A DNA stretch of 64,000 nucleotides from Penicillus capitatus (Eukaryota; Plantae; Chlorophyta): positions 1,317,949 through 1,381,948 of the forward strand of contig OZ287698.1 of assembly GCA_965649825.1 (NCBI GenBank). Reading direction: 5' to 3'. The notes under the pieces are model-generated. The model had not been told where the DNA came from. It saw only the letters and a program-made list of their open reading frames with translations, and did not search any database. The translations under genes were made by a program, and so were the position numbers. This document shows positions 8,504-29,724 of the stretch, one piece after another (positions within the stretch are counted from its first letter, which is position 1; each line of letters starts with the position of its first letter).

Positions 8504-9011
8504 ATGCGATTCTTCTTCGCCCTCTTACTGCTTGCCACTTGCGTGCCGTCGTCTGTCTGTGCGTCCGGTGAATCCGTGGTCTACGCATGCTGCGACCTTG
8601 GCGACTTCGAAACAGCTGGTGGCCACATCGTCTTCTCTCAGAAAAAGAACGGCGGTCCGACGTTTATTGCTGGTTGTCCTAGACAGACATAGGCGTCAGT
8701 GTCTCGAAAACGTCTTGTTTTCAGGTTTCATTACAAATGTCACGACGGGGTTACACGGTTGGCACATTCACGAATTCGGTATCACTCCAGGAGATAATCC
8801 ATGCGGCAGTGCTGGAGGCCACTTCAATCCTCTGGGTAAGTTTCCGGGCAAATACAACTAGACACAGATTTGGATATTTGGATCCAGATATGACGCATGG
8901 AGCTCCGGATGCCGAAGTGCGTCACATTGGTGACTTGGGTAACTTTGAAGCGAACGAATTCGGCGTCGGTTTCGTCGCAACGGCCGATACGCAGATAACT
9001 TTGGTGGGGCC
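8504..9011 (+). pseudogene. SOD: Secreted Cu/Zn superoxide dismutase, 5' part, interrupted by the LTR element
   Basis: Signal peptide [20 protein letters not shown]; introns 8673-8724 and 8836-8888; motifs [23 protein letters not shown] and RHIGDLGN. The frame runs into the LTR after ...ITLVGP. Confidence 0.93.
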
Positions 9012-9622
9012 TGTGAAGAACTCCCCCCGGCACCCTCTTCCTGCACCTCCCTCTCGACGTCCTCGGCTTGGACGACACGTATCTCTCCCTCGCCTTGGCC
9101 GGGAGGTGGAGGTGGAGCATTGTTGCCGGAGTCGTTCCCGTGTTGGCTCATCTCACAAGCGCAGCGGAAGTCTTGGAATTGGATGAGGATGGGCGAAAGC
9201 TCGGAGGCCACACAAACAGCTTTTGCAGCAAAGAGCGACTTGTTACAACTTTGGGAATAGACAGCGAATGTTTTTGACAGATTGTATGCGGTTCAGAACA
9301 CAAGTGTAAACTTTTGATGTTTTAAACGAAAGGTGGTTTATGTGTCCGACCCTCGTTTAAATACCCAGTCCCCGATGTGACAGTAGGAAAAGTATAAGAA
9401 GTTCAAGAGTGAGTTCATGGTGAGGTTCCGAATGAGACGTAGGAAGTTCATTACGAAACTCTAGAAGTTTCCTGAGAAGCTCAGCGTGAACTTCGCAGGG
9501 ACTCACTCCTTGTCATCGCGACTCAGCAGCGACGGTTACGTTGCGTAGCCAAGAGTGAAAGCAAGACATCACTACTGTCACCGTCACATCACCGTTTCCT
9601 GCACTTCGCGCCTTTCTTCACA
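9012..9622 (-). repeat. 3' LTR (611 bp)
   Basis: No differences from 16928-17538 found by eye; 9-bp terminal inverted repeats TGTGAAGAA...TTCTTCACA. Confidence 0.97.
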
Positions 9623-9748
9623 TGGGCGCACCCGTATGTCCGTATGCGCAAACTCCGAAATTGCGGAGCAAAAGAAAACTCAACCCGTACACAAACCTAA
9701 GCTATTGGTGATTCACTTGCAGGAAGCCCCTACTGGGCCGCGCGTTTG

Positions 9749-10753
9749 TCACACACGCGGGTCTGGAATGCCGATTCTGGTAGTCTCTGCCTGGTGCAGT
9801 ACACCGTTGACTCTGTCGATGGAGAGACGGAACGGGCCCATCACTTCTCTTCCCAATCTCGTCTCCACTCTCTCATTTACCACCATAAGGTGGAGAATGT
9901 GCGTCTCAAATCCCAGCTTCACTCTTGCGGACGTGTATCCGATCACCTCGCTGACTTCTCCATCGGGTCGTACCACACGTACCTCGATGCCAAAGCCTGG
10001 GGGAGGTGGTCCGTGCATGAGGTGAACACGGAGGCCGAGAAGTTCGGCCGTTCTGCGTCCGACGACGTGTCCCGAGAGCTCAGGATCCACAAGGAATCGG
10101 TGCGGGAGGGGAAGTTCCCCGAGTTCCCCTGCCGTGATGCACCTTGTGCCGGGACGACGGCGCGAGGCGAAGGGCGATGGCGGCGGTGGTGGAACGTCCC
10201 GAGGTGAGGACGGCCGAGGTGCCCTCGGCCTCACAGGTGGAGGTGGGGGCGGGTTCCCCATTCCTTGGCGGGAGGTGCCTTCCCCTTGTCTTCCTCGTGC
10301 CCTCCTTTGCTGTCCTCGCCTTGCTGTCCTGCTTCTCGGACCGGTTGCTCCCACCGGCGCCTCCAGAGCCGTCGACGTGCCACCGGCCTCCTCCTCGCAG
10401 CGCCTCTCGATTTCGGTGATGAGGTCGGCCAAGGTTAGGGGGCGGCAGAGCTCCCTGATTTCCGCCGTCCGGGCTTCTCTCAGGCTCCGTTCCGCCGCGG
10501 GCGTGAGGCTCTCCGAGGAGGAGGCCGGTGCCACGCGACGGAGGCTGGTCAGCCGGGCCAGGTTTCCTTCTGAGGTTGAACTGCTTCGTTCCCTCTTCAT
10601 GGCAAACCTAACCAACGCTTCGAAGAGGTAGAACGACAAGAACACCGAGAAGCCGATGCAAAATTCCTGTGCCACCGCGGTCCACGAATCAGCGACTATT
10701 CCCAGAATGACGGCAAGAATGAGTGCGAAGAAACTGAACACAACGAAAGACAT
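9749..10753 (-). CDS. Retroelement ORF3 (334 aa): two N-terminal TM helices, Arg/Pro-rich linker, degenerate retropepsin-like domain
   Basis: Hydrophobic N-terminus. The C-terminal FLVDPELSGHVV...RLSIDRVNGVL aligns by eye with the ORF1 protease MLVDSGSSVCVM...WSLDFAGNRLV. Confidence 0.8.
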   Translation of the reverse strand: MSFVVFSFFALILAVILGIVADSWTAVAQEFCIGFSVFLSFYLFEALVRFAMKRERSSSTSEGNLARLTSLRRVAPASSSESLTPAAERSLREARTAEIRELCRPLTLADLITEIERRCEEEAGGTSTALEAPVGATGPRSRTARRGQQRRARGRQGEGTSRQGMGNPPPPPPVRPRAPRPSSPRDVPPPPPSPFASRRRPGTRCITAGELGELPLPHRFLVDPELSGHVVGRRTAELLGLRVHLMHGPPPPGFGIEVRVVRPDGEVSEVIGYTSARVKLGFETHILHLMVVNERVETRLGREVMGPFRLSIDRVNGVLHQAETTRIGIPDPRV

Positions 10754-10791
10754 ATGCGAGCGAATGGTGAAATCCCGGTGCGGGCGGTCCC

Positions 10792-10797
10792 TTTATA
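10792..10797 (-). promoter_or_regulatory. TATA box of a putative internal promoter for ORF3
   Basis: Minus-strand TATAAA starts 44 nt before the ORF3 ATG, in the 274-nt pol-ORF3 spacer, with an initiator-like TCACCATTC about 25-30 nt downstream. Confidence 0.6.
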
Positions 10798-11027
10798 CCC
10801 CCGTAACCTCCGAGGACACGTGCCCAGCGCGCGCCCTGGCTGGCGGTTATCCTATGGTTCGCCCAAAGTTCATGACATCCGTCGGGAGCTTCGCTCCGCT
10901 GGAGGAAGCTATCTTCCAACCGTTGGGAGTTTCCTCACGCATTTGGTCATCCGTCGCAAACCGTTATGAACTTTTGGAAGACAAAGGTGTATCCGTCAGT
11001 AACCCGTCGGATTATCTAATGAGTGCG

Positions 11028-13889
11028 TCACATCTGCAGCAGCCGTAGCTGGTGCGAGTGACATGACCGGCGATTCCGCCCATCCAGTGTTTCGACCTCG
11101 ATGATATGCGGAGTGATAATAGCGCGGACGCGCCATCCCGACTCCCATTGGGCCGCTAGCTTATGCGCTGGCCGCGGCACCATGATTGCGACCTTGTCTC
11201 CAACTCGCAGATTTCTTCTCGTCGGGATGGTCCGCTCATGTCTCGCTCTTCTTCTTTGGCGCTGGCCGTCCGAGCGTTCTCGCGCCCTTTTTCTGATCCT
11301 TTCCAGCTCTGCGTCCGGGAGCCTGGTGCCATCGGGTCGTTTGCCTGTCATGATGAGCCTCGGGGCATATCCTGTGGCGGAGTGCCACGAGCCATTATAT
11401 GCCGCCTCCACGCGTTGGATGAGTGCTGGCCACGGCGCGCTTGGACCTTCTCTTCGGATACGGCCTAGAATGGTGCCAATTGCTCGTTCCGCCATTCCAT
11501 TGCTCCAGTGAGCGTAGGCAGGAGACAGTGCCATCTCCACGCGGTGCCGGCTGCAATACTCTTCGAAGTCAATGGACACGAAGGCTGCGCCTTGGTCACT
11601 CACGAGCCGGCGAGGGGGCCCGAAGTGATATATCCATTTACGCAGGCCCGCCTTCGCGGCCTCGGCCGTTGGCCCCGCTGAGGCTGTGAGCAGGACATAG
11701 CGGCTGAATCCGTCTATCATGAGAAACACGTGCACGTCATCTTCCTCCTCTTCCCAGTGTATGGGTCCGAGAAAATCGCAAAAAGCCGTGTCGTTGGGGC
11801 AGGGGCAATCCCACGAGCCCCAGACGGGCCGCTGAATGGGTCGTCCGTAGGCCTGACATTGCCTGCACCCTTGGACAAACTGTTGGACATGCGCTTTCAT
11901 TCCTGGCCAGTCTGCTCCCATTGCTTTGAGGTTCCTTAGCGTCGTCTGCCAGTTGAAGTGCCCTTCGTGAGCCTTCTTGATCTGCCTCAGCTGGCCTTGT
12001 GTTGGGCCCGTCGTTGCCTGAGACACCTCAGCTACACCCTTTCCCTTACGGGGTCTGGATAGGAGGTCCGCGCCTCGGTTTTCTGCCCCGGGAACGAACT
12101 CGACAATGAAGTTTTCGTTCCCCAGGAGCCATCCCAGTAGGCGCATCACTCGCTTGTCCTTGAGACTTGGCGCGCTGGTGCTCAGTTGCTCGGCGACCGC
12201 TTGGTTGTCCGTCCGGATGAGCAAAGGAAAGTCCCCTCGTAACGGCTTTGTGGCTTGACAGGCCCACACGATTGCCTTGAGTTCCCCGAGGAAGGATGAA
12301 GTCACTTCCGGCACACTCTTGCTTCCGAGGTCGACGAGGTGCTCGCAATCTGGCCCTTTGGCCCATAGCAGATATCCTGCGTGCTCCCCAGACCAATCCG
12401 TCTCGAGAATGTATTGCGTCGTCCGGAGACCGGGCAGTTCGAGCAATACCTGTCGATCGAGGGCTCGCAGCAGCACCTCCCAGACTTCCCGTCGGGCTTG
12501 GCCCCACCACTCGTCGTCCTGTTTTTTCGCCTTGGCTTCCGCGAGCAGCTGTCGGAGGGGCGCTATCAATCTTTCGAGGTCCACAATGGTTCGCCTTAAA
12601 TAGGAGAGCACTCCGATGAGGCGCTCGAGATCTTTCCAGTGCGTCACTTCCCCGAGTTGGGTCCAACGGCTGCGGAAGTACTCCGTTAGCGTCCATGACC
12701 CATGCGACAGTTCCATTCCCAGGAACTTGACTTTCGTCATCAGGAGCTCGGTCTTCGCGAGATTGACCTTGAGTCCGAACTCCTGGAAACGGGCGAAGAT
12801 GCTACGGACGCGGTCGCAGAGTTCTTCGGGAGTGACGCCGCCTATAAGGAGGTCGTCGGCGTATTGAACCGCACCGAGCCCCTGAACGATCTCGGCGACG
12901 CGCTCAGCGAAAAGGATCGGGCTCCAGGACCATCCCTGCGGCAGGCGCTTCCAGGCGTAGCGGCGGTCTTGCCAGGTGAAGGCAAACGCAGACTGCAGCT
13001 CTGGGCCCACCGGGATGGCGAAGAAACCATCCTTGAGATCCAGCTTTGCGAAGTATCGCCACGCTGGATCCACATCCCATAGTCGCCGCCAGACGTCGAT
13101 CTGGGTCATTCCATGCTTCTTGAAGTGAGCGTTCAGCCAACGAAAATCGTTGGTGAACCTGTAGCTTCCATCCTTTTTGGGGATGGGATACAGGGGGCTC
13201 AAGGCCACGCGCTCACCCATGGAGACTGGTCGTAGATAGCCGCGCTGAACGTAATGTTCAAGCTGCTCCGCTATCTTGCGTCGGTCGGCGACTTGCTCCG
13301 TTTTGTAGGATGTTCGCAACCCTTGCTCTCTGGGTGGCGTCCAGCAGACTTCGTCGGCTCTGACTCGGAGGGGCTCCATTGCGGGCACGATAGGGTGTCG
13401 GCTTAGGTCGCTCACGTCAGGAAAACGACTCGCCAGCTCGTCTCGCAGGGACTCAGCGAGAGTGTCGACGGCGACCGTGTTGATCTTGGCCAGCCGGACT
13501 ACCTCGATGCTGTCGTGTCCATGTAGGGAAACGAGGGGCGTCGTCGGAGTGATTCGGATCACTCTTTCTGACGTATTGTAGACCTCACAACGTATCATTC
13601 CTCCAGACGTCACCACTACTCCAGACAGAACTTCGGGCCGTTGGAAGCAGCTAGCTATTGTGACGCCGCCTTCTACTTCTATCTTCCACGGGAGGTACCA
13701 GCGTTCCCAAGTTCTCGGCGGCAAGAATCTTGGCTTTCCACTCTGCAGCTGGACTCCCTTTGGAGTGATTGAGATCCCGGTTCCATCCTTGATTTCCCAC
13801 TGCTGGTGCACGCGAACAATGCCGCCCCTCCCGTGGCTTTTGGAGGGGGCAGCTAGTTTGGGCGGTGTGCTTCCTGTACTGCCGCGCAC
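11028..13889 (-). CDS. pol: Pol: dUTPase-like fold, reverse transcriptase, RNase H and integrase, expressed by -1 frameshift
   Basis: RT: PKKDGSYRFTNDFR, KLDLKDGF, LPQGW, YADD. RNase H: ETDWS, GELKA, RTDN, ADLLSR. IN: HEGH...CRQC, CDFLGP, VSDQG, MAERA, and a GPY/F-like tail. The ORF has no ATG start (GTG at 13889). Confidence 0.97.
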   Translation of the reverse strand: MRGSTGSTPPKLAAPSKSHGRGGIVRVHQQWEIKDGTGISITPKGVQLQSGKPRFLPPRTWERWYLPWKIEVEGGVTIASCFQRPEVLSGVVVTSGGMIRCEVYNTSERVIRITPTTPLVSLHGHDSIEVVRLAKINTVAVDTLAESLRDELASRFPDVSDLSRHPIVPAMEPLRVRADEVCWTPPREQGLRTSYKTEQVADRRKIAEQLEHYVQRGYLRPVSMGERVALSPLYPIPKKDGSYRFTNDFRWLNAHFKKHGMTQIDVWRRLWDVDPAWRYFAKLDLKDGFFAIPVGPELQSAFAFTWQDRRYAWKRLPQGWSWSPILFAERVAEIVQGLGAVQYADDLLIGGVTPEELCDRVRSIFARFQEFGLKVNLAKTELLMTKVKFLGMELSHGSWTLTEYFRSRWTQLGEVTHWKDLERLIGVLSYLRRTIVDLERLIAPLRQLLAEAKAKKQDDEWWGQARREVWEVLLRALDRQVLLELPGLRTTQYILETDWSGEHAGYLLWAKGPDCEHLVDLGSKSVPEVTSSFLGELKAIVWACQATKPLRGDFPLLIRTDNQAVAEQLSTSAPSLKDKRVMRLLGWLLGNENFIVEFVPGAENRGADLLSRPRKGKGVAEVSQATTGPTQGQLRQIKKAHEGHFNWQTTLRNLKAMGADWPGMKAHVQQFVQGCRQCQAYGRPIQRPVWGSWDCPCPNDTAFCDFLGPIHWEEEEDDVHVFLMIDGFSRYVLLTASAGPTAEAAKAGLRKWIYHFGPPRRLVSDQGAAFVSIDFEEYCSRHRVEMALSPAYAHWSNGMAERAIGTILGRIRREGPSAPWPALIQRVEAAYNGSWHSATGYAPRLIMTGKRPDGTRLPDAELERIRKRARERSDGQRQRRRARHERTIPTRRNLRVGDKVAIMVPRPAHKLAAQWESGWRVRAIITPHIIEVETLDGRNRRSCHSHQLRLLQM
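13821..13862 (-). promoter_or_regulatory. -1 programmed ribosomal frameshift signal
   Basis: In-frame heptamer C CCA AAC (13862-13856) directly before the ORF1 TAG, followed by hairpin GCTGCCCCCTCC-AAAAGCCAC-GGGAGGGGCGGC. Pol lies in the -1 frame. Confidence 0.85.
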
Positions 13890-16714
13890 ATGACCGAGCG
13901 CCCATCCGGGGCCACGAGTCGGTTTCCCGCGAAGTCCAAACTCCAGCCGAAATCTCGCAGAGCGTTGACGCCGACGATTGGGTGCTCAGGCCCGTCTACT
14001 ACGAGAAATGGCACTTGTCTTGTTTCTCCGCCGATGTCTACCGGGAGGCCCACTCGGCCTCGAACCTGAGTGGCCACGCCGTTGAAAGCCTGGACTTCCA
14101 TTGGCTCCGGGAGGGGCTGGATTTCCCAACCGCCTTGTACGCAGCGTTCCGTGGGCATCACGCAGACGGAGGATCCCGAATCCACGAGCATCTGGACTGG
14201 ACTAGCGCCCTCGGCCAGCTTAGCGCGCACGTAGTAGAGCCGCGATGGGTCACTACTTGTGGCGGCGTCCCATACCGCTGCCACTGGTGGCCTGTCGCTT
14301 GGTCCCTCATCTGGTTGTCTCGGGAGCTCACTGACCGGAGGCTGAACCACTTGCTGCCAGAAGAGTGGGCACTCGTTAGTTGCGTGTCCGGATGCGTTGC
14401 AATTTGCACAGCGTCTCTGGTTGGGGCGCCTTGGCGTATGCGTGACTTGCAGCGATGGTCCTCCAACGTGTGGAGCCCGTCTAGGTATTGGTGACGCCGG
14501 GCGCGGTGCGGGAGGTCGGACCATCGGCGGAGGCGGTGGACGTGCCGCCGCAAGGGGCCTTCTGTCCATTTCCAGTTGGTGGAGTCGGTCCAGAATATTT
14601 TCGTATGTCTCGAAATTTGGCGGCAATGCCGGGCTCCGCGAGTGTGGCAACTCTTCGTCTTCACCATCACTGACAGGGCGGAGTTCCCACGCAAGTCGTG
14701 GTTTCGTCCGACGTCGGTCTTGGGTTTCGTCAGAAGCGTAGCCACCTGACCGCTGTCCCTGGCGTCCTCGGCCTCCAGGCGCTCGACCCCCTCGTCTTCC
14801 TCGTCCTCTCTGCCCGCCTCCTCTTCTGTCGCCGCGGGGCGCTTCCTCCCGTGGAACTGGTGGGGACGGCGGTGTGTTTTGCGGAGTCGCTGGAGGGGCT
14901 TCGGGCCTTGGCGCCTCTGGAGCCACTCTTCCCGCTGGTGGCGCGCGGTCTTCAGGCTGACGTGGTCCGGGATTGTTCGTCGACACTTGGGCCACCTCTT
15001 CGACTCTTGGTGCTGTTGGCGACGGACCTTGAACGACTGCCCGTCCCCTGTTCTCCTGTTGCGGAGATGGCTCACTGGTTTGTTCTTCTTGGTGCCCTTG
15101 TCCCGAACTCTGGCTGCTTCGTCCTTGACTCTCCGACCCTTGGCTGCTTCGTCGGCTACGTCGCCCTCTGGCGGCGCCCGCTCGTGGTGTCCTTGGACTC
15201 CGCTGTCGCGGGGAGGCCGGGGCCGGTCGCTCCAGCACAAACTCCTGCCCCAACTTATCCACAAATATCCGGACCATCCACCAGCCGAGTTGCAGGATCC
15301 GGCGGATGAGTCGGAACGGTAGCGCACAAATGGCGACCACCCATTCCACGATCTTCTCGACGGCTTTCTGCAGCGATTCCATGAGGTTCAATCCTCCGTG
15401 GATCATATCCACGGTTTTCTTGAGCAGAGCGCCCAGCACAGCGATTACGCACATCATTACGAAGATCACTATGCCCCAGCCCCAAAACGGTAACCAGGAG
15501 CAGAATGAGGCGAGCAATCCGAGTCCGCTGCGGAGCCACGGCCAGGCGGAAAACAGGTTGCCGGTGGTCTTTGCTCCCCAGCGCTGAAAGTCTTCGAAGG
15601 TGTCCTCGAGTTGCTCCCTTAGGCGTTGGGTGTCGAGATTGTTCTCAATGATACCGTCCTGCCTTGCCTTATCGACCAGCTCAAGCGCCTCTTCGCAGCG
15701 CTTCCTTGCGTTGTCGCAGTGACGCCTGAGCCGGGTCATTGATTCCTCAATTCCTTGCATCTGCTTACTCAGCGAAAGAGTGTTTGCATCCTGGCTTTCT
15801 TTGATCTTCTTTTCCAGGTCGGCGAGCTGTGCCTGGGACAGTTTTCCACTCCTCAGCGCTTCGTCGCGCACCGCCCTAGTCACGTCCGATGCCAATTGAT
15901 TCATCATGCGGTGCGCCCCGGACAGTGTCTCTTCGATACGTTTCTGCCCTTGGGACAGTGGTAGGGCGAATGCTTCGAGCTCCGCAGAGCGCTTGCTTTC
16001 GTAAAGCTTGCGTTCTGCCTGCATGTGCGCAAACATGTGGTTCATCTTACTGAGTTGGAGGATGAGTTGTGCGTCCAAGCCAGAGTTCTTAGTGGATTGT
16101 GCATGACTTAGCGTGTCCACGAAAAGCTCGGCAATTGGCTTGGCCCACGACGTCTTGGGGTCTAGACCGACATATGCCCCCAGCGCCGCCTTCATGCTTG
16201 CGGTAAATGCCGAGTTGAGTTGGAGCTCGTCCCACGCGAAGTCCGTTGTCGGGACGCATTCCGATATCCAGCCCTTCGTATTAAATTTCCATGTCGTTGT
16301 CATCTTTGACCCCCAGGGGCAGCCATCCGGCTGACGTTCGAAGTCACTGAACGCCGCGTAGTATTCGGCGAAACGTTCTTTAGGCGTTTGCCCCTTGTTT
16401 CGTGTGAGAATGACGACGGTCCCGATTAGTCCCAGGAGGAGAAGGGTGTGCAACCGGGAATACCAAATTGCCCTCCATCGCGCCCACGTACGGGGTGGGC
16501 GAGGATTGACGGCTGGAGGGGGTGCGTCCGCTTCTGGTGCGACAACGGGTTCGCCCGCTGGGGCCACCCCAGGTCGGGCGGCGACCGGGGCTCGTCTTCT
16601 TGTCCACCAGTCCTGTAGCTTCTCCAATTGTCTTCCTCCCCATTGGTCGAGATCCGTCAGAGTTTGCTTGAACGCCCGGGCGTTCTCGAAGATAAGCTCC
16701 TCAAATCTACTCAT
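13853..16714 (-). CDS. Retroelement ORF1 (953 aa): TM, coiled coil, TM, Pro/RGG-rich region, CCHC zinc knuckle, aspartic protease
   Basis: TM1 at about aa 88-104 and TM2 at about aa 411-431; CANCNASGHATNEC at 14369-14410; LVDSGS at 14174-14182; IVGVNAL. No capsid motif recognised. Confidence 0.9.
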   Translation of the reverse strand: MSRFEELIFENARAFKQTLTDLDQWGGRQLEKLQDWWTRRRAPVAARPGVAPAGEPVVAPEADAPPPAVNPRPPRTWARWRAIWYSRLHTLLLLGLIGTVVILTRNKGQTPKERFAEYYAAFSDFERQPDGCPWGSKMTTTWKFNTKGWISECVPTTDFAWDELQLNSAFTASMKAALGAYVGLDPKTSWAKPIAELFVDTLSHAQSTKNSGLDAQLILQLSKMNHMFAHMQAERKLYESKRSAELEAFALPLSQGQKRIEETLSGAHRMMNQLASDVTRAVRDEALRSGKLSQAQLADLEKKIKESQDANTLSLSKQMQGIEESMTRLRRHCDNARKRCEEALELVDKARQDGIIENNLDTQRLREQLEDTFEDFQRWGAKTTGNLFSAWPWLRSGLGLLASFCSWLPFWGWGIVIFVMMCVIAVLGALLKKTVDMIHGGLNLMESLQKAVEKIVEWVVAICALPFRLIRRILQLGWWMVRIFVDKLGQEFVLERPAPASPRQRSPRTPRAGAARGRRSRRSSQGSESQGRSSQSSGQGHQEEQTSEPSPQQENRGRAVVQGPSPTAPRVEEVAQVSTNNPGPRQPEDRAPPAGRVAPEAPRPEAPPATPQNTPPSPPVPREEAPRGDRRGGGQRGRGRRGGRAPGGRGRQGQRSGGYASDETQDRRRTKPRLAWELRPVSDGEDEELPHSRSPALPPNFETYENILDRLHQLEMDRRPLAAARPPPPPMVRPPAPRPASPIPRRAPHVGGPSLQVTHTPRRPNQRRCANCNASGHATNECPLFWQQVVQPPVSELPRQPDEGPSDRPPVAAVWDAATSSDPSRLYYVRAKLAEGASPVQMLVDSGSSVCVMPTERCVQGGWEIQPLPEPMEVQAFNGVATQVRGRVGLPVDIGGETRQVPFLVVDGPEHPIVGVNALRDFGWSLDFAGNRLVAPDGRSVMCAAVQEAHRPN

Positions 16715-16863
16715 GACTTGCTGGTTCTCGCCAGGGGGCGCATCTTCCTGGGCCGGGGGAGCGGCCGCTGGTTCGGCAGCGGCTTGTCTTTCTTCTTCGC
16801 GCCTTTGTGCCTCTTGTCGTAACCAACCAAGATGTTGTAATAGCGCGTCGTCAGGTACCCTCC

Positions 16864-17067
16864 TTAATTCAGGAGGGGGTCTTCCTCTTGAGGCTGCTGT
16901 GGCGGTGGACCGTTCGCTCCGAAACCATGTGAAGAACTCCCCCCGGCACCCTCTTCCTGCACCTCCCTCTCGACGTCCTCGGCTTGGACGACACGTATCT
17001 CTCCCTCGCCTTGGCCGGGAGGTGGAGGTGGAGCATTGTTGCCGGAGTCGTTCCCGTGTTGGCTCAT
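16864..17067 (-). CDS. LTR-initiated upstream ORF (67 aa), possibly the true N-terminus of ORF1
   Basis: ATG 17067 lies inside the 5' LTR and reads [17 protein letters not shown]...QQPQEEDPLLN*. The ORF1 frame is open across the same span in the -1 frame. Confidence 0.45.
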   Translation of the reverse strand: MSQHGNDSGNNAPPPPPGQGEGEIRVVQAEDVEREVQEEGAGGSSSHGFGANGPPPQQPQEEDPLLN

Positions 17068-17538
17068 CTCACAAGCGCAGCGGAAGTCTTGGAATTGGAT
17101 GAGGATGGGCGAAAGCTCGGAGGCCACACAAACAGCTTTTGCAGCAAAGAGCGACTTGTTACAACTTTGGGAATAGACAGCGAATGTTTTTGACAGATTG
17201 TATGCGGTTCAGAACACAAGTGTAAACTTTTGATGTTTTAAACGAAAGGTGGTTTATGTGTCCGACCCTCGTTTAAATACCCAGTCCCCGATGTGACAGT
17301 AGGAAAAGTATAAGAAGTTCAAGAGTGAGTTCATGGTGAGGTTCCGAATGAGACGTAGGAAGTTCATTACGAAACTCTAGAAGTTTCCTGAGAAGCTCAG
17401 CGTGAACTTCGCAGGGACTCACTCCTTGTCATCGCGACTCAGCAGCGACGGTTACGTTGCGTAGCCAAGAGTGAAAGCAAGACATCACTACTGTCACCGT
17501 CACATCACCGTTTCCTGCACTTCGCGCCTTTCTTCACA
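16928..17538 (-). repeat. 5' LTR (611 bp)
   Basis: Copy of 9012-9622, followed by TSD GGGCC. Confidence 0.97.
17272..17279 (-). promoter_or_regulatory. TATA-like box in the LTR (copy at 9356-9363)
   Basis: Minus-strand TATTTAAA, placed upstream of the uORF and ORF1 in the sense direction. Confidence 0.45.
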
Positions 17539-17543
17539 GGGCC

Positions 17544-17682
17544 ATCGGAGCAGAGCGTTCTCGGCCGAACCCTCGTGATACACGCCGACGAAGATGATTT
17601 GGGTCTCGTGGGAAATGCTGGAAGCCTTGCCACTGGCAATGCCGGTGCTCGTGTCGGATGCTGCGTCATCACAGTAACATGA
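17544..17682 (+). pseudogene. SOD: Cu/Zn superoxide dismutase, 3' part, resuming after the insertion
   Basis: [20 protein letters not shown]...[18 protein letters not shown]. It is in frame with the 5' part once the element and one GGGCC copy are removed. Confidence 0.93.
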
Positions 17683-25250: not shown

Positions 25251-25363
25251 AACGCAATACGTCATGATTGGCGAATGCATCTTGCTTAATGAACGCCTAC
25301 GACAGTAGACGGTACTGTTGAGGGAAATAGCTTTTCGTTTGTGTGACGCTTCTTGAGTGTATC

Positions 25364-27250
25364 ATGGGGGGTCTCAAAGACATATACTGTCGGACAAGAG
25401 ACACATTCCTTCGCAAAGGATTTGCAACCCGCAGCATTCAGAATTCATTCGACAATGCGCACGCAAACGAAGGGGGCCTGCGTGCCGTGTTGGGCGTTAG
25501 AGACCTGACAATGCTCGGCGTTGGTGCTATCATTGGCGCTGGCGTCTTTGTTCTAACAGGAGAAGCCGCAAAGGAATTCGCAGGGCCATCCATTATCATA
25601 TCTTACCTCTTCTCCTCAATTGCCGCTATCCTTCTCGCTCTCAGCTACGTCGAATTCGCCGTCGACCTTCCTGTGACTGGAGGAGCGTTCAACTATGTCT
25701 GTCTCGTTCAAGGAGAGTATCTCGCATGGTGATGATCGCTGTCCTTGTCGAGACGATGACAATCTGTTCTCTCCCTTTAGGCTAGCTGGATTTTGCATGA
25801 TGCTGGAATACAGTTTAGGAGCAGCTGCAGTATCCAAAGGGTTCAGTGGATATCTCGCCAGTCTGTTCGGTTTAAGCACATCTGCTTTTGTCGCCTCTGC
25901 ATCTATCTTTGATTTCGATGCCCTTGCCTTTGTCTTGATTTCTACTCTGGCACTCCTGCTGTACTTTGGAACGAAGGAATCCGCCTGGTTCAATTTCCTG
26001 GTCACAGCAACGAATCTTCTCGTGATTCTGTTCATCTTGGCAGTGGCAGTCGGCAAAGGAGATAAGGATCATTTTGATCCATTCGTGCCGCTGGGAACCC
26101 AGAATCTATTTCGCGCAGCAGCCGTCGTGTTCTTTGCATATATCGGGTTCGATAGTCTCGTGACAGTCGCTGCCGAAGTGAAGAATCCTCAAAGAGATTT
26201 GCCGATCGCCGTCGTTGGATCCATCAGCATCTGCACAGTGCTCTATATGTTGATGGCAGCCGCCCTGATTGGTCTGCAAGTGTAAGTCGGTACACTCACT
26301 CGTATCTCCTTGTGATTTGGGCATCGCACAGATACAATGAAATTGATGCGACTGCTCCATTTTCCGAGGCCTTTGTCTCTGTGGGAATGCGATGGGCTGG
26401 ACGGATCGTCTCCCTTGGAGCATTGACAGGAATCGTGACATCTGTGCTCGTGAATCTGCTCGGACAGTCTCGTATCCTCGTCGCCTTAGGCAGGCAGCAT
26501 CTTCTGCCTCCCTGGATCGTGAGTTCTTTCCTCTCTGCTTTCCCTCCTTTCGAGCATTTGTCACAGGCAGTCATCGACGAAAAACATGGCACGCCGAAGA
26601 ACGCATTGTTCGTAAATTGGGCAGCATCGGGTATCCTGGCCTTGCTGTTTGATATCGATATCTTGGCTCGGATGGTGTCGATGGGTACTCTCTTTGTGCT
26701 AACTCTTGTCTCTCTTGGGGCCATCCAACGTATGTACATCTCACGAAACACTCCCCAGTCAAACGTGTGGCCAGCATTGGTATCATCGTCTCGAGTTGAT
26801 CACTCAAAATGGATATGTGATCGCATTTAGATTCGGATCATGGTTTTGCTTGTAGCAGCAATCGTCGAAGGAGCAGTCTTTGCACTCGATGCACCACCAG
26901 TTGTGTTTGTCATTCCCTTGGTTATCGTTCTTCTCGTTACCATTTCTTTCTATCGACTGCCGGTCGTGTATATCCCTGAGAAGTTCGTCACACCGTTAAA
27001 GCCCGTGACTCCATGTGCAGCTGTCCTGTCAGCTGTGCATCTCATGTTCAGTCTGGGATGGGAAGCGCATTTGCTTTTCGTTGTCTGGCTGGTTTTGGGA
27101 TCGATTGCATATATCTGCTACGGTATGCACCACAGTGACGAACCAGTGGAGCAGACGATCAAACAAGTCCAGTTACAGCAAGCCGAAGGCGAACATCACG
27201 ACTCAAATCTAATGTCCGGCATCGCTGAACGTTCAGATGTCGCTCTGTAA
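25364..27250 (+). CDS. Cationic amino acid transporter (APC superfamily), multi-exon
   Basis: LGVGAIIGAGVFVLTG, AGPSIIISY, EFAVDLPVTGGAFNY, FAYIGFD, EVKNPQRDLP, GQSRI and SMGTLF. Confidence 0.93.
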
Positions 27251-27734
27251 CGTCATGTGAATGCAGGGCATTCTATATCACCATTCGTCCTTTCTTCAAC
27301 GCTTCACTTCTTTCATTCCTACGTCTCCTCTTGCCGTCATACATCAACGCCCCCTGTATGGAGTATCTCTTGCATCGCCAAAGATGGCTGATGCAAATAG
27401 TAGTTATTCATTTCAGGTATGAAAAATGGAGGGAGCCCAACAATACGCAGTAGCAATGAGCTTCAAGCGATAGTGTTTCTAAATGAGTGCTGGTGATGGG
27501 CTCTTCTCCTGGATAGGAGCTTCTGTTCATTTGGACAATGATCTGCATTTGACACTATGCCGCAAAACAGCTGACCGTTCGAAGATTGTAAACATCAATC
27601 GCCTCTAAAAAGAAGAAACGGAAGGTTCGGTCTCTGACGCGCGACTTCCCCTTTAATGATGTGACAGATAGACATGATGGCCGCGATTCCGTGCACGAAT
27701 AAGTCTTTGTGTCATCGTGTTCCTATAACACATC

Positions 27735-28511
27735 ATGTTTGGCGACTCCTCCAAAGGATGGATACCGTTCCAGACGGACGTGGAAATGGGATACGACAAC
27801 AGCTTTGACGTCGACGCTCGTCGCGGCTTTATTCGCAAAGTCTTTGGTACGCTTTTGTAAAAGCATCTCCGTCAACAACATTCGGTCGTTCTAGGTATCC
27901 TCAGTCTTCAACTGCTCGTAACGGCCTGCATCGGAGGCTTCATCGTTGGCGTCTCTGCCATCAAGAATTGGATGTTTACGAACATCTGGGTGTTCTATCT
28001 CGTTATGCTGGCCTCGTTTGTGTTCCTCATCGTTCTGGTCTGTACGCCAGATATGAAGAACCGATATCCTCACAACCTCATCTTGCTTTTTGCATTTACT
28101 GCTTGTGAGGGTGTGTTGGTGGGCACCGTATCTGCGACCTATGATCTCAATGCTGTCGTCTTAGCAGCTGTCATCACGACAGGAGTGACCATCGGGCTCA
28201 CGATCTTTGCCTTCCAGACGAAAATCGACTTTACATTGTTCAGTGGCGTCCTGTTTGCATGTTTGGTGGCCCTGTGTCTGACAAGCTTCATTCTTTTGAT
28301 CTTTCCTACAAATGGCACAGGATCCACGATATTTGCTGGACTGGGAGCATTGCTGTTTTCGGCTTACCTGGTCTATGATGTCCAGATGATTGCTGGCGGA
28401 CATAAACACGAACTGGGACTTGATGACTACATCCCAGCTGCACTCGCCGTCTATCTGGACATCATAAATCTCTTTCTTTTTATCTTGAGACTCCTGAGCA
28501 ATCGTAACTGA
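27735..28511 (+). CDS. BI-1/TMBIM family, Lifeguard-like protein 1
   Basis: RRGFIRKVFGILSLQLLVT, YPHNLILL, QTKIDFT, YLVYDVQMIAGG and AVYLDIINLF; one 48-nt intron. Confidence 0.92.
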
Positions 28512-28959
28512 AAAGGGACGACACGTTCTATGTAGCTCGAGGAGACTGAACAAACACACCTTCTACATAATTGTATAGCGCCGCTGTCACCATCACGTCT
28601 GGCTATGAAACAATGATATCAAAGATGATCATCAGCGTGACAATAGAGTAGAAGACATAGAATTACCAACCCTTGTGGAGCGAGCGTACCATCGATGAAC
28701 TTGCATTTCTAAACGCAATCTTTTCGGATTTCTTCGTTCTCACATTTCTGAACCGTTTTGCTATTGTCGAAGGTGAGAAGTACGTAGAATCTTCCTATCT
28801 GACGTCACCACTATCAGAATCTATAATATCGGAGTGATAAGAGTTTCACCGCATTGCTGTGTTCTGCTCGATCTTTCCTCCAGTCATCGACGTTGTATTC
28901 GAACCCAAAAGCTCAACGCATTTCGTCGACGCGATCGTTCGACTCAGTTGGTTGCCGCA

Positions 28960-29724
28960 ATGGACGATTACTCGCCGAGTATTGACAGCAGTTTCCTGAG
29001 AGACTACAGCATCAAAGAGCGACACGGATTCACCGCAAGAGCTTTCGGTGAGCAAAGCGACTTGGTAGTTTGCATTTGAAAACCTGATGTGTCGTCAGGA
29101 GTAATGTCTGCGCAGCTCCTTATAACGTTCATTGTTGCTTCTCCTTTTGTCTTCATTTCTTCTTTTGAAAGCTACCTTAACGATGAAAACCGCATCTGCT
29201 TCATCGTTGTACCCCTTGTCATTGTGGTGGCAGTCGGACTGCAGTTCATCCCACAAGTGCTCGAGGAGAATCCGCAACTGATTGTGGCGACCACGGGTCT
29301 CACCATCGGCGAAGGAGTTTCCTTTGGCATCGTCGCCGCCACTTTTGACCTCAATGCCCTGCTGCTCCTCCCTACTGTTGCCGCCGCGGTAACATTTCTA
29401 CTGTGCATTTACTCATTGCAACGAAAGATAGATTACAACCTGTTTTTCGGATTCCTCCTTTGCTTTATAATGGCGATCGTCGGTACTGTTATCGTGTTTC
29501 TAAAGGTCGACTTTCGCGACGAAATCTCGACAATTGCATGTGGTGCTGCGGCAGGCATCTTTGCTTTTTACTTTGCATATGATATTCAGCGTCTAGCTTG
29601 CGACCTTAGATGTCAACTGAATGATCTGATGGTTCTCTTGGGGATTCCGCTGAAGGCGTATTTCGATATCGTTCATTTGGTGATCAACGCATTTGATTCT
29701 CTAGCTGAAAACAAACCATTCTAA
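28960..29724 (+). CDS. BI-1/TMBIM family, divergent Lifeguard-like paralogue 2
   Basis: RHGFTARAFGVMSAQLLITF, QRKIDYN, YFAYDIQRL and AYFDIVHL; intron at the same position as in paralogue 1. Confidence 0.8.

Follow-up and report, generated by a model that had tools for sequence, protein, structure and literature searches.

The element and its insertion site

The window (the whole stretch of 64,000 nucleotides analysed) holds an LTR retroelement inserted in a host Cu/Zn superoxide dismutase gene, whose last exon it interrupts. Its outer features are as follows:

9012..17538 (-), whole LTR retroelement, 8,527 bp, bounded by direct repeats with TG..CA ends
16928..17538 (-), 5′ LTR, 611 bp, within which the N-terminal extension of ORF1 starts
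9012..9622 (-), 3′ LTR, 611 bp
9007..9011, target-site duplication GGGCC, left copy, 5 bp
17539..17543, target-site duplication GGGCC, right copy, 5 bp
16916..16927 (-), PBS-like (primer-binding-site-like) 12-mer TGGTTTCGGAGC, directly 3′ of the 5′ LTR
9623..9633 (-), conserved 11-mer GGGTGCGCCCA, adjoining the 3′ LTR
8737..9011 (+), last coding exon of host Cu/Zn superoxide dismutase, part before the insertion
17539..17681 (+), the same exon, part after the insertion (end coordinate approximate)

The two 611-bp LTRs of the window copy are 100% identical and end in TG..CA. LTR pairs are likewise identical in three other copies (L002, L086, and L087), and these identities, together with the insertion into a host exon, indicate recent activity, as a sequence-only reading of this DNA had proposed. 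That reading also held the ORFs to be intact, which is true of the 953-aa ORF1 body, pol, and ORF3, all open in the window copy, but not of the 138-aa N-terminal extension of ORF1, which carries one single-base frameshift. The target duplication is also 5 bp long in relatives L086 and L002; the ends of L001 were checked and lack one.

Judging from the window sequence and sister copies, translation of ORF1 starts in the 5′ LTR and passes through the primer-binding site. In four subfamilies the identical 12-mer TGGTTTCGGAGC directly adjoins the 5′ LTR; it lies in frame within the ORF1 extension, where it codes for the peptide HGFGA. L089 and L090 have this peptide too, and the variants HGFEA (L003, L007) and HGFVA (L088) also occur. 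No tRNA gene matching TGGTTTCGGAGC was found in the DNA searched. At the other end, GGGTGCGCCCA sits where a polypurine tract is expected, yet it is not purine-rich.

ORF1 encodes a predicted membrane module fused to nucleocapsid and protease

The features of ORF1 are listed below; its topology is throughout a prediction based on hydropathy.

13853..17127 (-), ORF1 gene including the N-terminal extension, beginning inside the 5′ LTR
13853..16714 (-), ORF1 open body, 953 aa
16460..16714 (-), aa 1–85, N-terminal region, predicted cytosolic, Trp/Arg-rich
16403..16459 (-), aa 86–104, hydrophobic segment 1 (Kyte–Doolittle 1.72)
15554..16402 (-), aa 105–387, predicted luminal/extracellular domain with Cys pair and long helices
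15479..15553 (-), aa 388–412, Trp-rich membrane-proximal stretch
15407..15478 (-), aa 413–436, predicted transmembrane segment TM2 (Kyte–Doolittle 2.77; summed apparent free energy −3.3)
15230..15406 (-), aa 437–495, predicted cytosolic tail, amphipathic part aa 454–480
14420..15229 (-), aa 496–765, low-complexity linker rich in Pro, Arg, and Gly, with RGG repeats and a single PTAP
14369..14410 (-), aa 769–782, nucleocapsid (NC), a single CCHC zinc knuckle (CX2CX4HX4C)
13955..14212 (-), aa 835–920, retropepsin (PR), Pfam aspartyl protease (E 1.7e-7)

This domain order, with its hydrophobic segments, bears out the sequence-only reading that the Gag slot is occupied by a predicted membrane module fused to nucleocapsid and protease, and the individual parts that it had named (Cys pair, Trp-rich stretch, TM2, amphipathic tail, Pro/RGG-rich sequence, one CCHC knuckle, and a DSG protease, the active site lying at aa 845–847) are all present. 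The first membrane span, placed by that reading at aa 88–104, corresponds to hydrophobic segment 1, whose core of only 15–17 residues makes it signal-anchor-like; the segment is weak in one subfamily (L001). The region ahead of it has the conserved residues W25, D35, and R39. TM2, a hydrophobic stretch about 24 residues long, is the top-scoring segment in every relative. By hydropathy, the order of signal sequence, large ectodomain, C-terminal anchor, and tail is predicted in the window copy and in 11 relatives.

Within the predicted luminal domain, Cys132 and Cys153 (CP.G...C) do not vary among the four subfamilies that can be aligned, a pairing that fits a putative oxidising compartment; a C-X6-C motif at aa 333–340 is present in two of the four. 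The long, heptad-rich helices of the sequence-only reading were recovered in part: helices are predicted across aa 163–407, at low confidence, in AlphaFold models, and a single 30-residue window (aa 252–281) exceeds 95% of shuffles, but the heptad signal is modest. Knuckle number in relatives is mostly one to five, with none in L011 and a variant spacing in L088.

Frameshift signal, pol, and ORF3

Downstream of the protease lie the following features:

13856..13862 (-), −1 slippery heptamer CCCAAAC, just ahead of the ORF1 stop
13821..13853 (-), GC-rich hairpin 3′ of the slippery site
11028..13889 (-), ORF2 (pol), in the −1 frame relative to ORF1
first in pol, ahead of RT (-), N-terminal domain, conserved
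12708..13184 (-), reverse transcriptase (RT), Pfam RVT_1, pol aa 236–394
12057..12506 (-), RNase H, Pfam, pol aa 462–611
11514..11987 (-), integrase (IN) zinc domain and core, Pfam Integrase_H2C2 (pol aa 635–681) and rve (pol aa 697–792)
9749..10753 (-), ORF3, 334 aa, N-terminal TM helices and a Ser- and Arg/Pro-rich linker
9749..10216 (-), C-terminal retropepsin-like domain of ORF3, inactive, a paralogue of the protease

The LTRs and the order PR-RT-RNase H-IN support the reading as an LTR retroelement with a Ty3/gypsy-type pol. In all 12 elements (12/12), a −1 slippery heptamer and a hairpin lie at most two codons from the ORF1 stop, and the hairpin structure is retained in relatives despite differing sequence. 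This canonical signal would join RT, RNase H, and integrase to a fraction of ORF1 chains. The best match of the pol N-terminal domain in the PDB was a dCTP-deaminase and was nonsignificant. By its sequence features, ORF3 is a membrane-anchored, inactive paralogue of the protease, and its dN/dS is 0.15.

Relatives, selection, and exchange of the membrane module

The pol of related elements is 36–89% identical to that of the window copy. Each of the further elements with an alignable ORF1 has the same ORF1 plan (11/11), a recurrence that chance does not explain, and the membrane module is in frame in 12 elements from at least six independent assemblies. Several relatives carry, instead of the internal hydrophobic segment, a plain signal-peptide-like one at the N-terminus. 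The luminal domain is homologous across the lineages of the window copy, L001, L086, and L002, which share CP.G...C and other invariant columns; L089 and L090 match by eye in this pair and in domain order. In distant relatives the luminal part is much shorter, about 100–130 aa. No relatives of the membrane module were found outside the element family, nor any relatives in IMG/VR viral contigs.

Comparison of the window copy with its sister L087 (dS about 0.18) gave dN/dS values of 0.038 (segment 1 plus ectodomain), 0.094 (NC-PR), and 0.108 (pol). No part of ORF1 is more constrained than the membrane module, which is under strong purifying selection. Between the window copy and L086, aa 1–600 are about 20% identical, in comparison with 96–100% in PR and 90–96% in pol, a mosaic showing that the membrane module has been exchanged between lineages.

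The sequence-only reading did not mention this exchange, ORF3, the start of ORF1 within the LTR, or the frameshift that its extension carries.

Search for a capsid or a fusogen

That ORF1 has no recognisable capsid, as first claimed, agrees with Pfam, in which no capsid family was found in ORF1 of the window copy or of ten further relatives (eight ORF1s, the window copy and seven others, were scanned at E up to 0.1–10, and three, including L087, were assessed from precomputed Pfam marks). Against the PDB, sequence (phmmer) and profile searches with ORF1 gave no match, and no capsid even at E up to 10. Two AlphaFold models of the ORF1 region were poor (pLDDT 47.6 and 48.8), and Foldseek against the PDB and BFVD returned no match at E ≤ 0.001, a weak test because the query model is poor. 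We therefore regard a capsid-like fold as ruled out through sequence methods and the logic of topology rather than through structure. Nor was a capsid candidate found elsewhere in the element, in either the pol N-terminal domain or ORF3.

The term “envelope-like”, used in the sequence-only reading, is not supported by homology, and the features behind it are generic. Pfam, PDB phmmer, PDB profile, and Foldseek searches gave no significant similarity to a fusogen; the only R-x-[KR]-R in the window ectodomain (aa 328) is missing in L001, L086, and L002, so that no furin site is conserved; no fusion-peptide-like segment is conserved in the ectodomain; and the window ectodomain has zero N-glycosylation sequons. 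The membrane module makes up the first half of ORF1 and precedes NC-PR-pol rather than following pol.

A proposed membrane-integrated polyprotein in place of a capsid

On balance, we lean towards the view that ORF1 is a membrane-integrated structural polyprotein replacing a capsid-forming Gag. Hydrophobic segment 1 would direct the ORF1 chain to the ER, and the domain with the Cys pair and helices would cross to the luminal (topologically extracellular) side. TM2 would act as a stop-transfer sequence and keep everything after it (tail, RNA-binding part, protease, and frameshifted Pol) on the cytosolic face, where the CCHC knuckle and the RGG region would bind element RNA at the membrane. Lateral contacts among luminal helical domains and amphipathic tails could then cluster the protein and curve the bilayer away from the cytosol, the outcome being a membrane-bounded compartment or particle that performs the enclosing role of a capsid shell. 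Dimerisation of the protease would release the enzymes for reverse transcription, which may take place inside such a vesicle, and ORF3 probably modulates protease activation. The weakest step is the return of the DNA–integrase complex to the nucleus, which might proceed via an open neck or by fusion. It is also conceivable, and would count against this view, that a spliced mRNA lacks the membrane module.

A bolder alternative is that the lineage, having no capsid, is an enveloped, retrovirus-like agent, possibly transmissible from cell to cell, in which Gag and Env are one chain: a single transmembrane polyprotein would build the particle, and its luminal domain would be both coat and attachment or fusion machine. 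This would suit an ectodomain that is the most constrained part of ORF1 and a module that is swapped between close elements in the manner of env genes (the window copy vs. L086), as well as the Trp-rich membrane-proximal stretch, the long helices, and the C-X6-C of two subfamilies. The PTAP in the predicted cytosolic linker of three copies points the same way, but it is patchy (L086 and L002 lack it, as do the distant relatives) and arises by chance in 9.5% of shuffles. The ectodomain, moreover, resembles no known fusogen in sequence or fold, it is without a conserved furin-type site, a fusion-peptide-like segment, or (in the window copy) sequons, its heptad signal is modest, and IMG/VR viral contigs gave no relatives; TM, Cys, and coil features are, in any case, not specific to env (PMC5408684). 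We consider this alternative unlikely, albeit worth keeping in mind.

It is rather improbable that the membrane module merely targets or regulates, the RNP being held at the ER or nuclear envelope, or hidden from host defences, as an open tethered complex with no compartment. Membrane-associated, capsid-less proteins in the gag position have been discussed for the esterase ORF1 of some non-LTR elements (PMC5408684), an extracellular phase is unnecessary in a unicellular host, and the luminal parts of distant relatives are, as noted, much shorter; however, a simple anchor does not need a 300-aa luminal domain at a dN/dS of 0.04, nor a Cys pair and a membrane-proximal motif kept over deep divergence.

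That the N-terminal half is instead a highly diverged capsid, with the hydrophobic segments as buried helices, seems to us very improbable. The region is all-helical in both AlphaFold models, structure prediction is too poor to exclude any fold, and a Q-x-Q-G that is invariant in three subfamilies loosely recalls the major homology region, but this motif is lost in L002, and the predicted helices, at 35–60 residues, are not capsid-like. The length of TM2 and its strongest score in each relative also speak against burial, as do the relatives that begin with signal-peptide-like segments, which would place the homologous domain outside the cytosol; Pfam and the PDB, searched at E up to 10, offered no capsid. 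An artefact, in which a single copy of a gag-less element gained a host membrane-protein gene through chance fusion or an assembly error, has in its favour only the lack of relatives of the module beyond the element family, and we dismiss it, given that the module is in frame in those 12 elements from at least six assemblies, lies between LTR/PBS and NC, and is under purifying selection.

If ORF1 is indeed a membrane-integrated replacement for Gag, its significance lies in an exception to a general rule, the capsid/nucleocapsid Gag being held to be the canonical structural gene in every recognised group of LTR retroelements (domain schemes in PMC12440569). The family would be a deep, active lineage with an integral membrane protein in place of a capsid, and a natural case in which lipid, not a protein shell, encloses a reverse-transcribing replication complex. 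Its module, swapped as env genes are, is relevant to the gain, fusion, and exchange of envelopes and structural proteins as retroelements evolve, and ORF3, a membrane-anchored dead-protease paralogue, is an additional unusual component. No published description of such a capsid-less, membrane-fused Gag design was found in the literature. Because ORF1 starts inside the LTR, the PBS lies inside an ORF, and there is no gag match, standard TE annotation pipelines may miss or mislabel the family.

Comparison with known systems

One of the nearest known systems is the Ty3/gypsy group (Metaviridae), with which the family shares TG..CA LTRs, a 5-bp target duplication, a CCHC nucleocapsid, the order PR-RT-RNase H-IN, in which RT is followed immediately by a single RNase H without a tether, and an integrase with H2C2 zinc and DDE domains. 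The family pol profile is colinear with Ty3 Gag-Pol over RT-RH-IN (positions 213–933, E 1.4e-59), and the integrase C-terminal GPY/F motif (W.GP[YF] or GP[YF]) occurs in 23 of 40 relatives, being degenerate in the window copy's own subgroup. Among PDB structures, the RT region scored 150–157 bits with foamy virus PR-RT, 121 with CaMV, and 114 with Ty3 RT/RH, which is a ranking of structures and not an RT phylogeny. The family differs from Ty3/gypsy elements in having the membrane module where Retrotrans_gag/CA would be, a protease in the gag frame ahead of the −1 frameshift, an ORF1 that begins in the LTR and runs through the PBS, and a tract beside the 3′ LTR that is not purine-rich; ordinary Ty3/gypsy pols are only 22–28% identical to the family pol.

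Membrane proteins without classical env homology are found in other LTR retrotransposons. In ORF3 of the bdelloid Vesta4, cysteines lie between two hydrophobic regions, and a coiled coil is also present (PMC5408684); sORF2 of the Drosophila MDG1 group is a short, fusogen-like TM protein (PMC11952523). In both cases, however, the membrane protein comes from a small ORF of its own, and the element has an ordinary Gag that forms a capsid; neither protein is fused to NC-PR or takes over from the capsid.

A transmembrane Gag also arises in MLV, in which an upstream extension in the gag frame adds a membrane span to give glycoGag (PMC12530543). That protein is type II, with MA-CA-NC outside the cytosol, and it retains its capsid and is accessory to a normal Gag, whereas NC-PR of the window element, with its two hydrophobic segments, is predicted to be cytosolic, there is no CA, and no second gag is encoded. 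Gag of the intracisternal A-type particle, a mouse endogenous retrovirus, goes to the ER membrane, and its particles bud into the cisternae in an intracellular cycle. It keeps MA-CA-NC, forms a protein shell, and is peripheral or signal-targeted, whereas ORF1 of the window element is predicted to be integral to the membrane, crossing it twice, with a large domain on the luminal side.

Foamy-virus Env (leader peptide-SU-TM) is a parallel in predicted topology, with a long cytoplasmic N-terminal part, an internal hydrophobic targeting segment, a large luminal domain, a C-terminal span, and a cytoplasmic tail. The two differ in that no homology of sequence or fold was detected, ORF1 has no furin sites, and foamy Env has its own gene downstream of pol and works with a separate Gag, whereas the membrane part of ORF1 is continuous with NC, PR, and Pol. 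Lattices of foamy-virus Env are able to drive budding and to release capsid-less subviral particles (PMC7828637), and, by analogy, they offer a precedent for the shaping and budding of membranes by a glycoprotein without a capsid.

Element structure and insertion site

The element ends in two direct repeats of 611 bp that are 100% identical, start with TG and end with CA, and it is flanked by a 5-bp duplication (GGGCC). Its features and the interrupted host gene are as follows (window coordinates):

9012-17538, minus strand: whole LTR element, 8,527 bp
16714..13853, minus strand: ORF1, a single ORF of 953 aa in the Gag slot
-1 frame, downstream of ORF1: pol, 953 aa, with Pfam matches to RVT_1, RNase H-like, integrase H2C2 zinc, and rve core
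9749-10753, minus strand: ORF3, 334 aa, between pol and the 3′ LTR
8737-9011 and 17539-~17681, plus strand: host Cu/Zn superoxide dismutase gene, final coding exon (another exon lies upstream of it, at about 8.6-8.75 kb)

Joining the two flanks, with the duplication kept once, returned a continuous Sod_Cu match (profile positions 52-133 of 133, reaching the end; E = 2.2e-22). LTR pairs are 100% identical in the window copy and in the related elements L002, L086, and L087; in L001 the figure is 99.85%. Because a host exon is disrupted and the LTRs are identical, the window insertion is very young. The sequence-only reading had called this design recently active; identical LTRs and the exon insertion uphold this for the family, but not necessarily for this copy. 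Adjoining the 3′ LTR, at the expected position of a polypurine tract, lies GGGTGCGCCCA (9623-9633, minus strand), which is not purine-rich; three subfamilies conserve this sequence, and L002 has a closely related form of it.

In sister copies and three other subfamilies, ORF1 starts within the 5′ LTR, and its frame crosses a 12-nt primer-binding-site-like sequence, TGGTTTCGGAGC; in the window, the stretch from this start through the primer-binding site is 16916-17127 (minus strand). The peptide HGFGA (variants HGFEA and HGFVA) recurs across the proteins of the lineage because these conserved nucleotides are translated. A single one-base indel separates the window copy from its 96%-identical sister, L087, in the 138-aa ORF1 extension, so the open frame of the window ORF1 begins at an internal Met; this indel may reflect either a genuine mutation or a fault of the assembly. 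The earlier claim of intact ORFs therefore holds for the rest of the copy, which is open, but not for this extension. No tRNA genes or Rfam matches were found within the 64-kb window.

Two low-coverage contigs, those of L003 (ctg203420_2.17x_c, 15.6 kb) and L004 (ctg19334_4x_c, 24.8 kb), each carry more than one tandem copy of the element, with repeats of 4,042 bp at 99.98% and 2,042 bp at 99.7% identity. We read the “c” ending of the contig names as a circular flag; the repeats are either real forms (tandem or extrachromosomal) or artefacts of assembly.

The host is a eukaryote with introns and ~47% G+C, metagenome-assembled at 18-167x coverage. Its superoxide dismutase sequence was not discriminating as a host marker. 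Genes near the element at 25343-29724 (plus strand) are split into short exons, as read from ORF translations, and include an amino-acid permease-like gene (25.3-27.3 kb, plus strand, from its ORF translation) and two adjacent multi-pass membrane-protein paralogues (27972-28511 and 29089-29724, plus strand) that look by eye like members of the Bax-inhibitor/TMBIM family. Farther along, three very long open frames (39101-63741, minus strand; 3,309, 2,386, and 2,495 aa) together make up a giant midasin-like protein in which multiple dynein-type AAA domains are combined with VWA domains and Ig-like domains of the HYDIN/ASH type. Among named proteins, its 600-aa AAA block has no relative above ~34% identity across one third of the query.

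ORF1 is a predicted membrane protein with no detectable capsid

Hydropathy, Pfam, and motif reading gave the following layout of ORF1:

aa 86-104: hydrophobic segment 1, with a core of 15-17 residues
~300-aa domain: Cys132, Cys153, Cys333, and Cys340
aa 388-412: Trp-rich stretch
aa 413-436: TM2, a strongly hydrophobic helix
after TM2: amphipathic tail, then a linker dominated by Pro, Arg, and Gly
aa 769-782: one CX2CX4HX4C knuckle (NC)
aa 835-920: DSG aspartyl protease (PR), a Pfam match

All parts of the layout proposed in the sequence-only reading are present. Its description of the helices as heptad-rich fits modestly, with one window (aa 252-281) above the 95th percentile of shuffled controls. 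TM2 is unambiguous on two hydrophobicity scales, and segment 1 resembles a signal-anchor more closely than a complete membrane span. The region between TM2 and the knuckle is of low complexity. Among the copies compared, no late-domain motif, furin site, or N-glycosylation sequon is conserved in ORF1, so none was counted as evidence.

Sequence searches for a capsid were negative. With permissive thresholds, Pfam returned only the protease and zinc knuckles, and no capsid family, in eight ORF1s; the precomputed Pfam marks of L087 ORF1 hold nothing beyond these, and the contig-cut L088-L090 have no Pfam data. PDB searches, run once from the single sequence and once from a profile of four lineages, returned nothing better than E = 0.28, except for one match to a designed PPR protein (E = 3e-4) that is short and of low complexity. 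Elsewhere in the element, the N-terminal domain of pol and ORF3 (both described below) yielded no capsid candidate either. A Q-x-Q-G motif considered as a major homology region was dropped, as the positions that follow do not fit and the motif is absent from L002. AlphaFold2 gave poor models of ORF1 (pLDDT 47.6 from the single sequence and 48.8 from a 14-row alignment), and Foldseek found no match to them in the PDB or BFVD at E = 0.001, searches that are uninformative because of the low pLDDT. The earlier statement that no capsid is recognisable is borne out by the sequence searches, and the structure models did not help; the case for an element lacking a capsid is one of sequence evidence and a topological argument, not of fold.

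Distribution of the family and its shared plan

Several metagenome assemblies, from ENA, JGI, Logan, and one NCBI WGS set, contain relatives of pol (36-89% identical); ordinary Ty3/gypsy pols are only 22-28% identical to that of the element. One relative comes from JGI sample 3300000977 (“BBAY70”), which probably belongs to a macroalgal-surface series. Scanning IMG/VR viral contigs with pol and with the membrane module (the N-terminal half of ORF1, carrying the hydrophobic segments and the predicted luminal domain) returned no relatives. ORF1 aa 1-497 had no match in a word-indexed protein search, and an exhaustive search of 1.84 billion representatives matched three clusters, all of this element family.

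We compared 11 related elements (L001, L002, L003, L004, L007, L011, and L086-L090). At least one hydrophobic segment precedes the protease in ORF1 of all 11, and most of their ORF1s carry one to five CCHC knuckles (none in L011, variant spacing in L088). No capsid family is on record for any of the 11. The luminal domain can be aligned across the window copy, L001, L086, and L002, with invariant columns that include a C-P-x-G...C pair; in L089 and L090, a C-P-P-G...C pair, a helical region, the Trp-rich stretch, and TM2 are recognisable by eye. This ORF1 plan is a trait of the family and no accident of a single copy. Six relatives (L003, L004, L007, L088, L089, and L090) have their first hydrophobic segment at or near the N-terminus and signal-peptide-like, so the homologous domain is likely outside the cytosol, in the lumen, and NC, PR, and Pol inside. 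The invariant Cys pair fits a non-cytosolic placement.

Selection on ORF1 and exchange of the membrane module

We computed dN/dS between the window copy and L087 (dS ~0.18). The lowest value was that of segment 1 plus the ectodomain (0.038), so the luminal domain is the most constrained part of ORF1; values were 0.14 for the ORF1 N-terminal region, 0.14 for TM2 and the tail, 0.19 for the linker, 0.094 for NC-PR, and 0.108 for pol.

Identity to other lineages changes along ORF1. Compared with that of L086 (3960-7037; from the same sample), the window ORF1 (13853-16714, minus strand) is ~20% identical over aa 1-600, whereas the protease is 96-100% and pol 90-96% identical, and the window LTR ends are close to those of L086. 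The pattern is reversed against L001 (3885-6965): the membrane module is 64-84% identical, PR 46-50%, and pol 59-78%. This mosaic indicates that the membrane module has been swapped as a unit between lineages by recombination.

Expression and classification of pol

ORF1 ends in ...CCA AAC TAG, where C CCA AAC matches the X XXY YYZ pattern of canonical slippery heptamers, and a GC-rich hairpin of 11-12 bp starts two bases past it. All 12 elements have CCCAAAC or AAAAAAC at most two codons from the ORF1 stop, followed by a hairpin (12 of 12) whose sequence varies by lineage. A -1 shift at this site enters the pol frame directly, so part of the chains would carry RT, RNase H, and integrase on the same predicted membrane-anchored polyprotein. 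Between the frameshift site and RT lies one further feature:

13434-13889, minus strand (pol aa 1-152): conserved domain of ~140 aa, apparently beta-rich

This domain has no Pfam match, and its best PDB profile match, dCTP deaminase, is not significant (E = 0.18). Some more distant relatives (e.g., P0026) have a clear dUTPase between RNase H and integrase instead.

The family pol profile aligned with Ty3 Gag-Pol in one continuous alignment over RT, RNase H, and integrase (E = 1.4e-59). With the RT region alone, foamy-virus PR-RT scored highest among solved structures, and the best integrase match was the prototype foamy virus enzyme. These matches, the absence of an RT-RNase H tether domain, and a GPY/F motif in 23 of 40 relatives place the lineage, on its pol sequence, within the Ty3/gypsy-retrovirus assemblage. 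By published criteria (PMC12440569), we rejected identity with Troyka, which has CG..CG termini and 3-bp duplications, and with Loki/Odin, which have the tether.

ORF3 as an inactive protease paralogue

ORF3 is conserved in the window copy and three relatives:

10136-11128: ORF3 of L086
13375-14391: ORF3 of L087
9951-10946: ORF3 of L001

It evolves under purifying selection (dN/dS 0.15-0.18) and encodes a predicted membrane-anchored protein: TM helices at the N-terminus are joined to a C-terminal domain by a linker rich in Ser and in Arg/Pro. Its divergence is discordant, with dS = 1.9 against L087 compared with 0.18 for ORF1. BLAST between ORF3 and the ORF1 protease was not significant; profile-profile alignment (hhalign) matched the ORF3 C-terminal domain to the family ORF1 protease over 127 columns (probability 97.9%, E = 4.7e-13). 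The catalytic D-S/T-G position is D-P-x in all four copies, so ORF3 is an inactive protease paralogue. Retropepsins act as dimers, and an ORF3-protease heterodimer would therefore be inactive. We infer that ORF3 may regulate when the protease becomes active at the membrane.

A membrane-integrated Gag substitute

The best-supported reading of these sequences is that ORF1 would be a membrane-integrated Gag substitute. Its RNA-binding and enzymatic parts would face the cytosol, the conserved helical domain would sit across the membrane from them, and clustering of ORF1 would yield a replication complex enclosed in lipid instead of a protein shell. The enclosure may be an invagination that stays open, or else a particle, either closed off within a cisterna or released from the cell. 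Because the luminal domain is strongly constrained and has been exchanged between lineages, it probably does more than anchor. That this domain is an envelope stays a minority view because it has no fusogen signature; TM segments, cysteines, and coiled coils are not env-specific (Rodriguez et al., PMC5408684).

Two known systems bear on the membrane-integrated Gag substitute. Foamy-virus Env forms a glycoprotein lattice that is able to drive budding, with release of particles that lack a capsid (PMC7828637), and in MLV glycoGag an upstream extension makes Gag transmembrane (PMC12530543). In the open-access full-text literature, we found no description of this lineage or of an LTR element with an integral-membrane, capsid-less Gag. 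The nearest described cases are elements that have kept a normal Gag and carry a small TM ORF apart from it. We rate the present element as an LTR retroelement whose structural-gene design is new.
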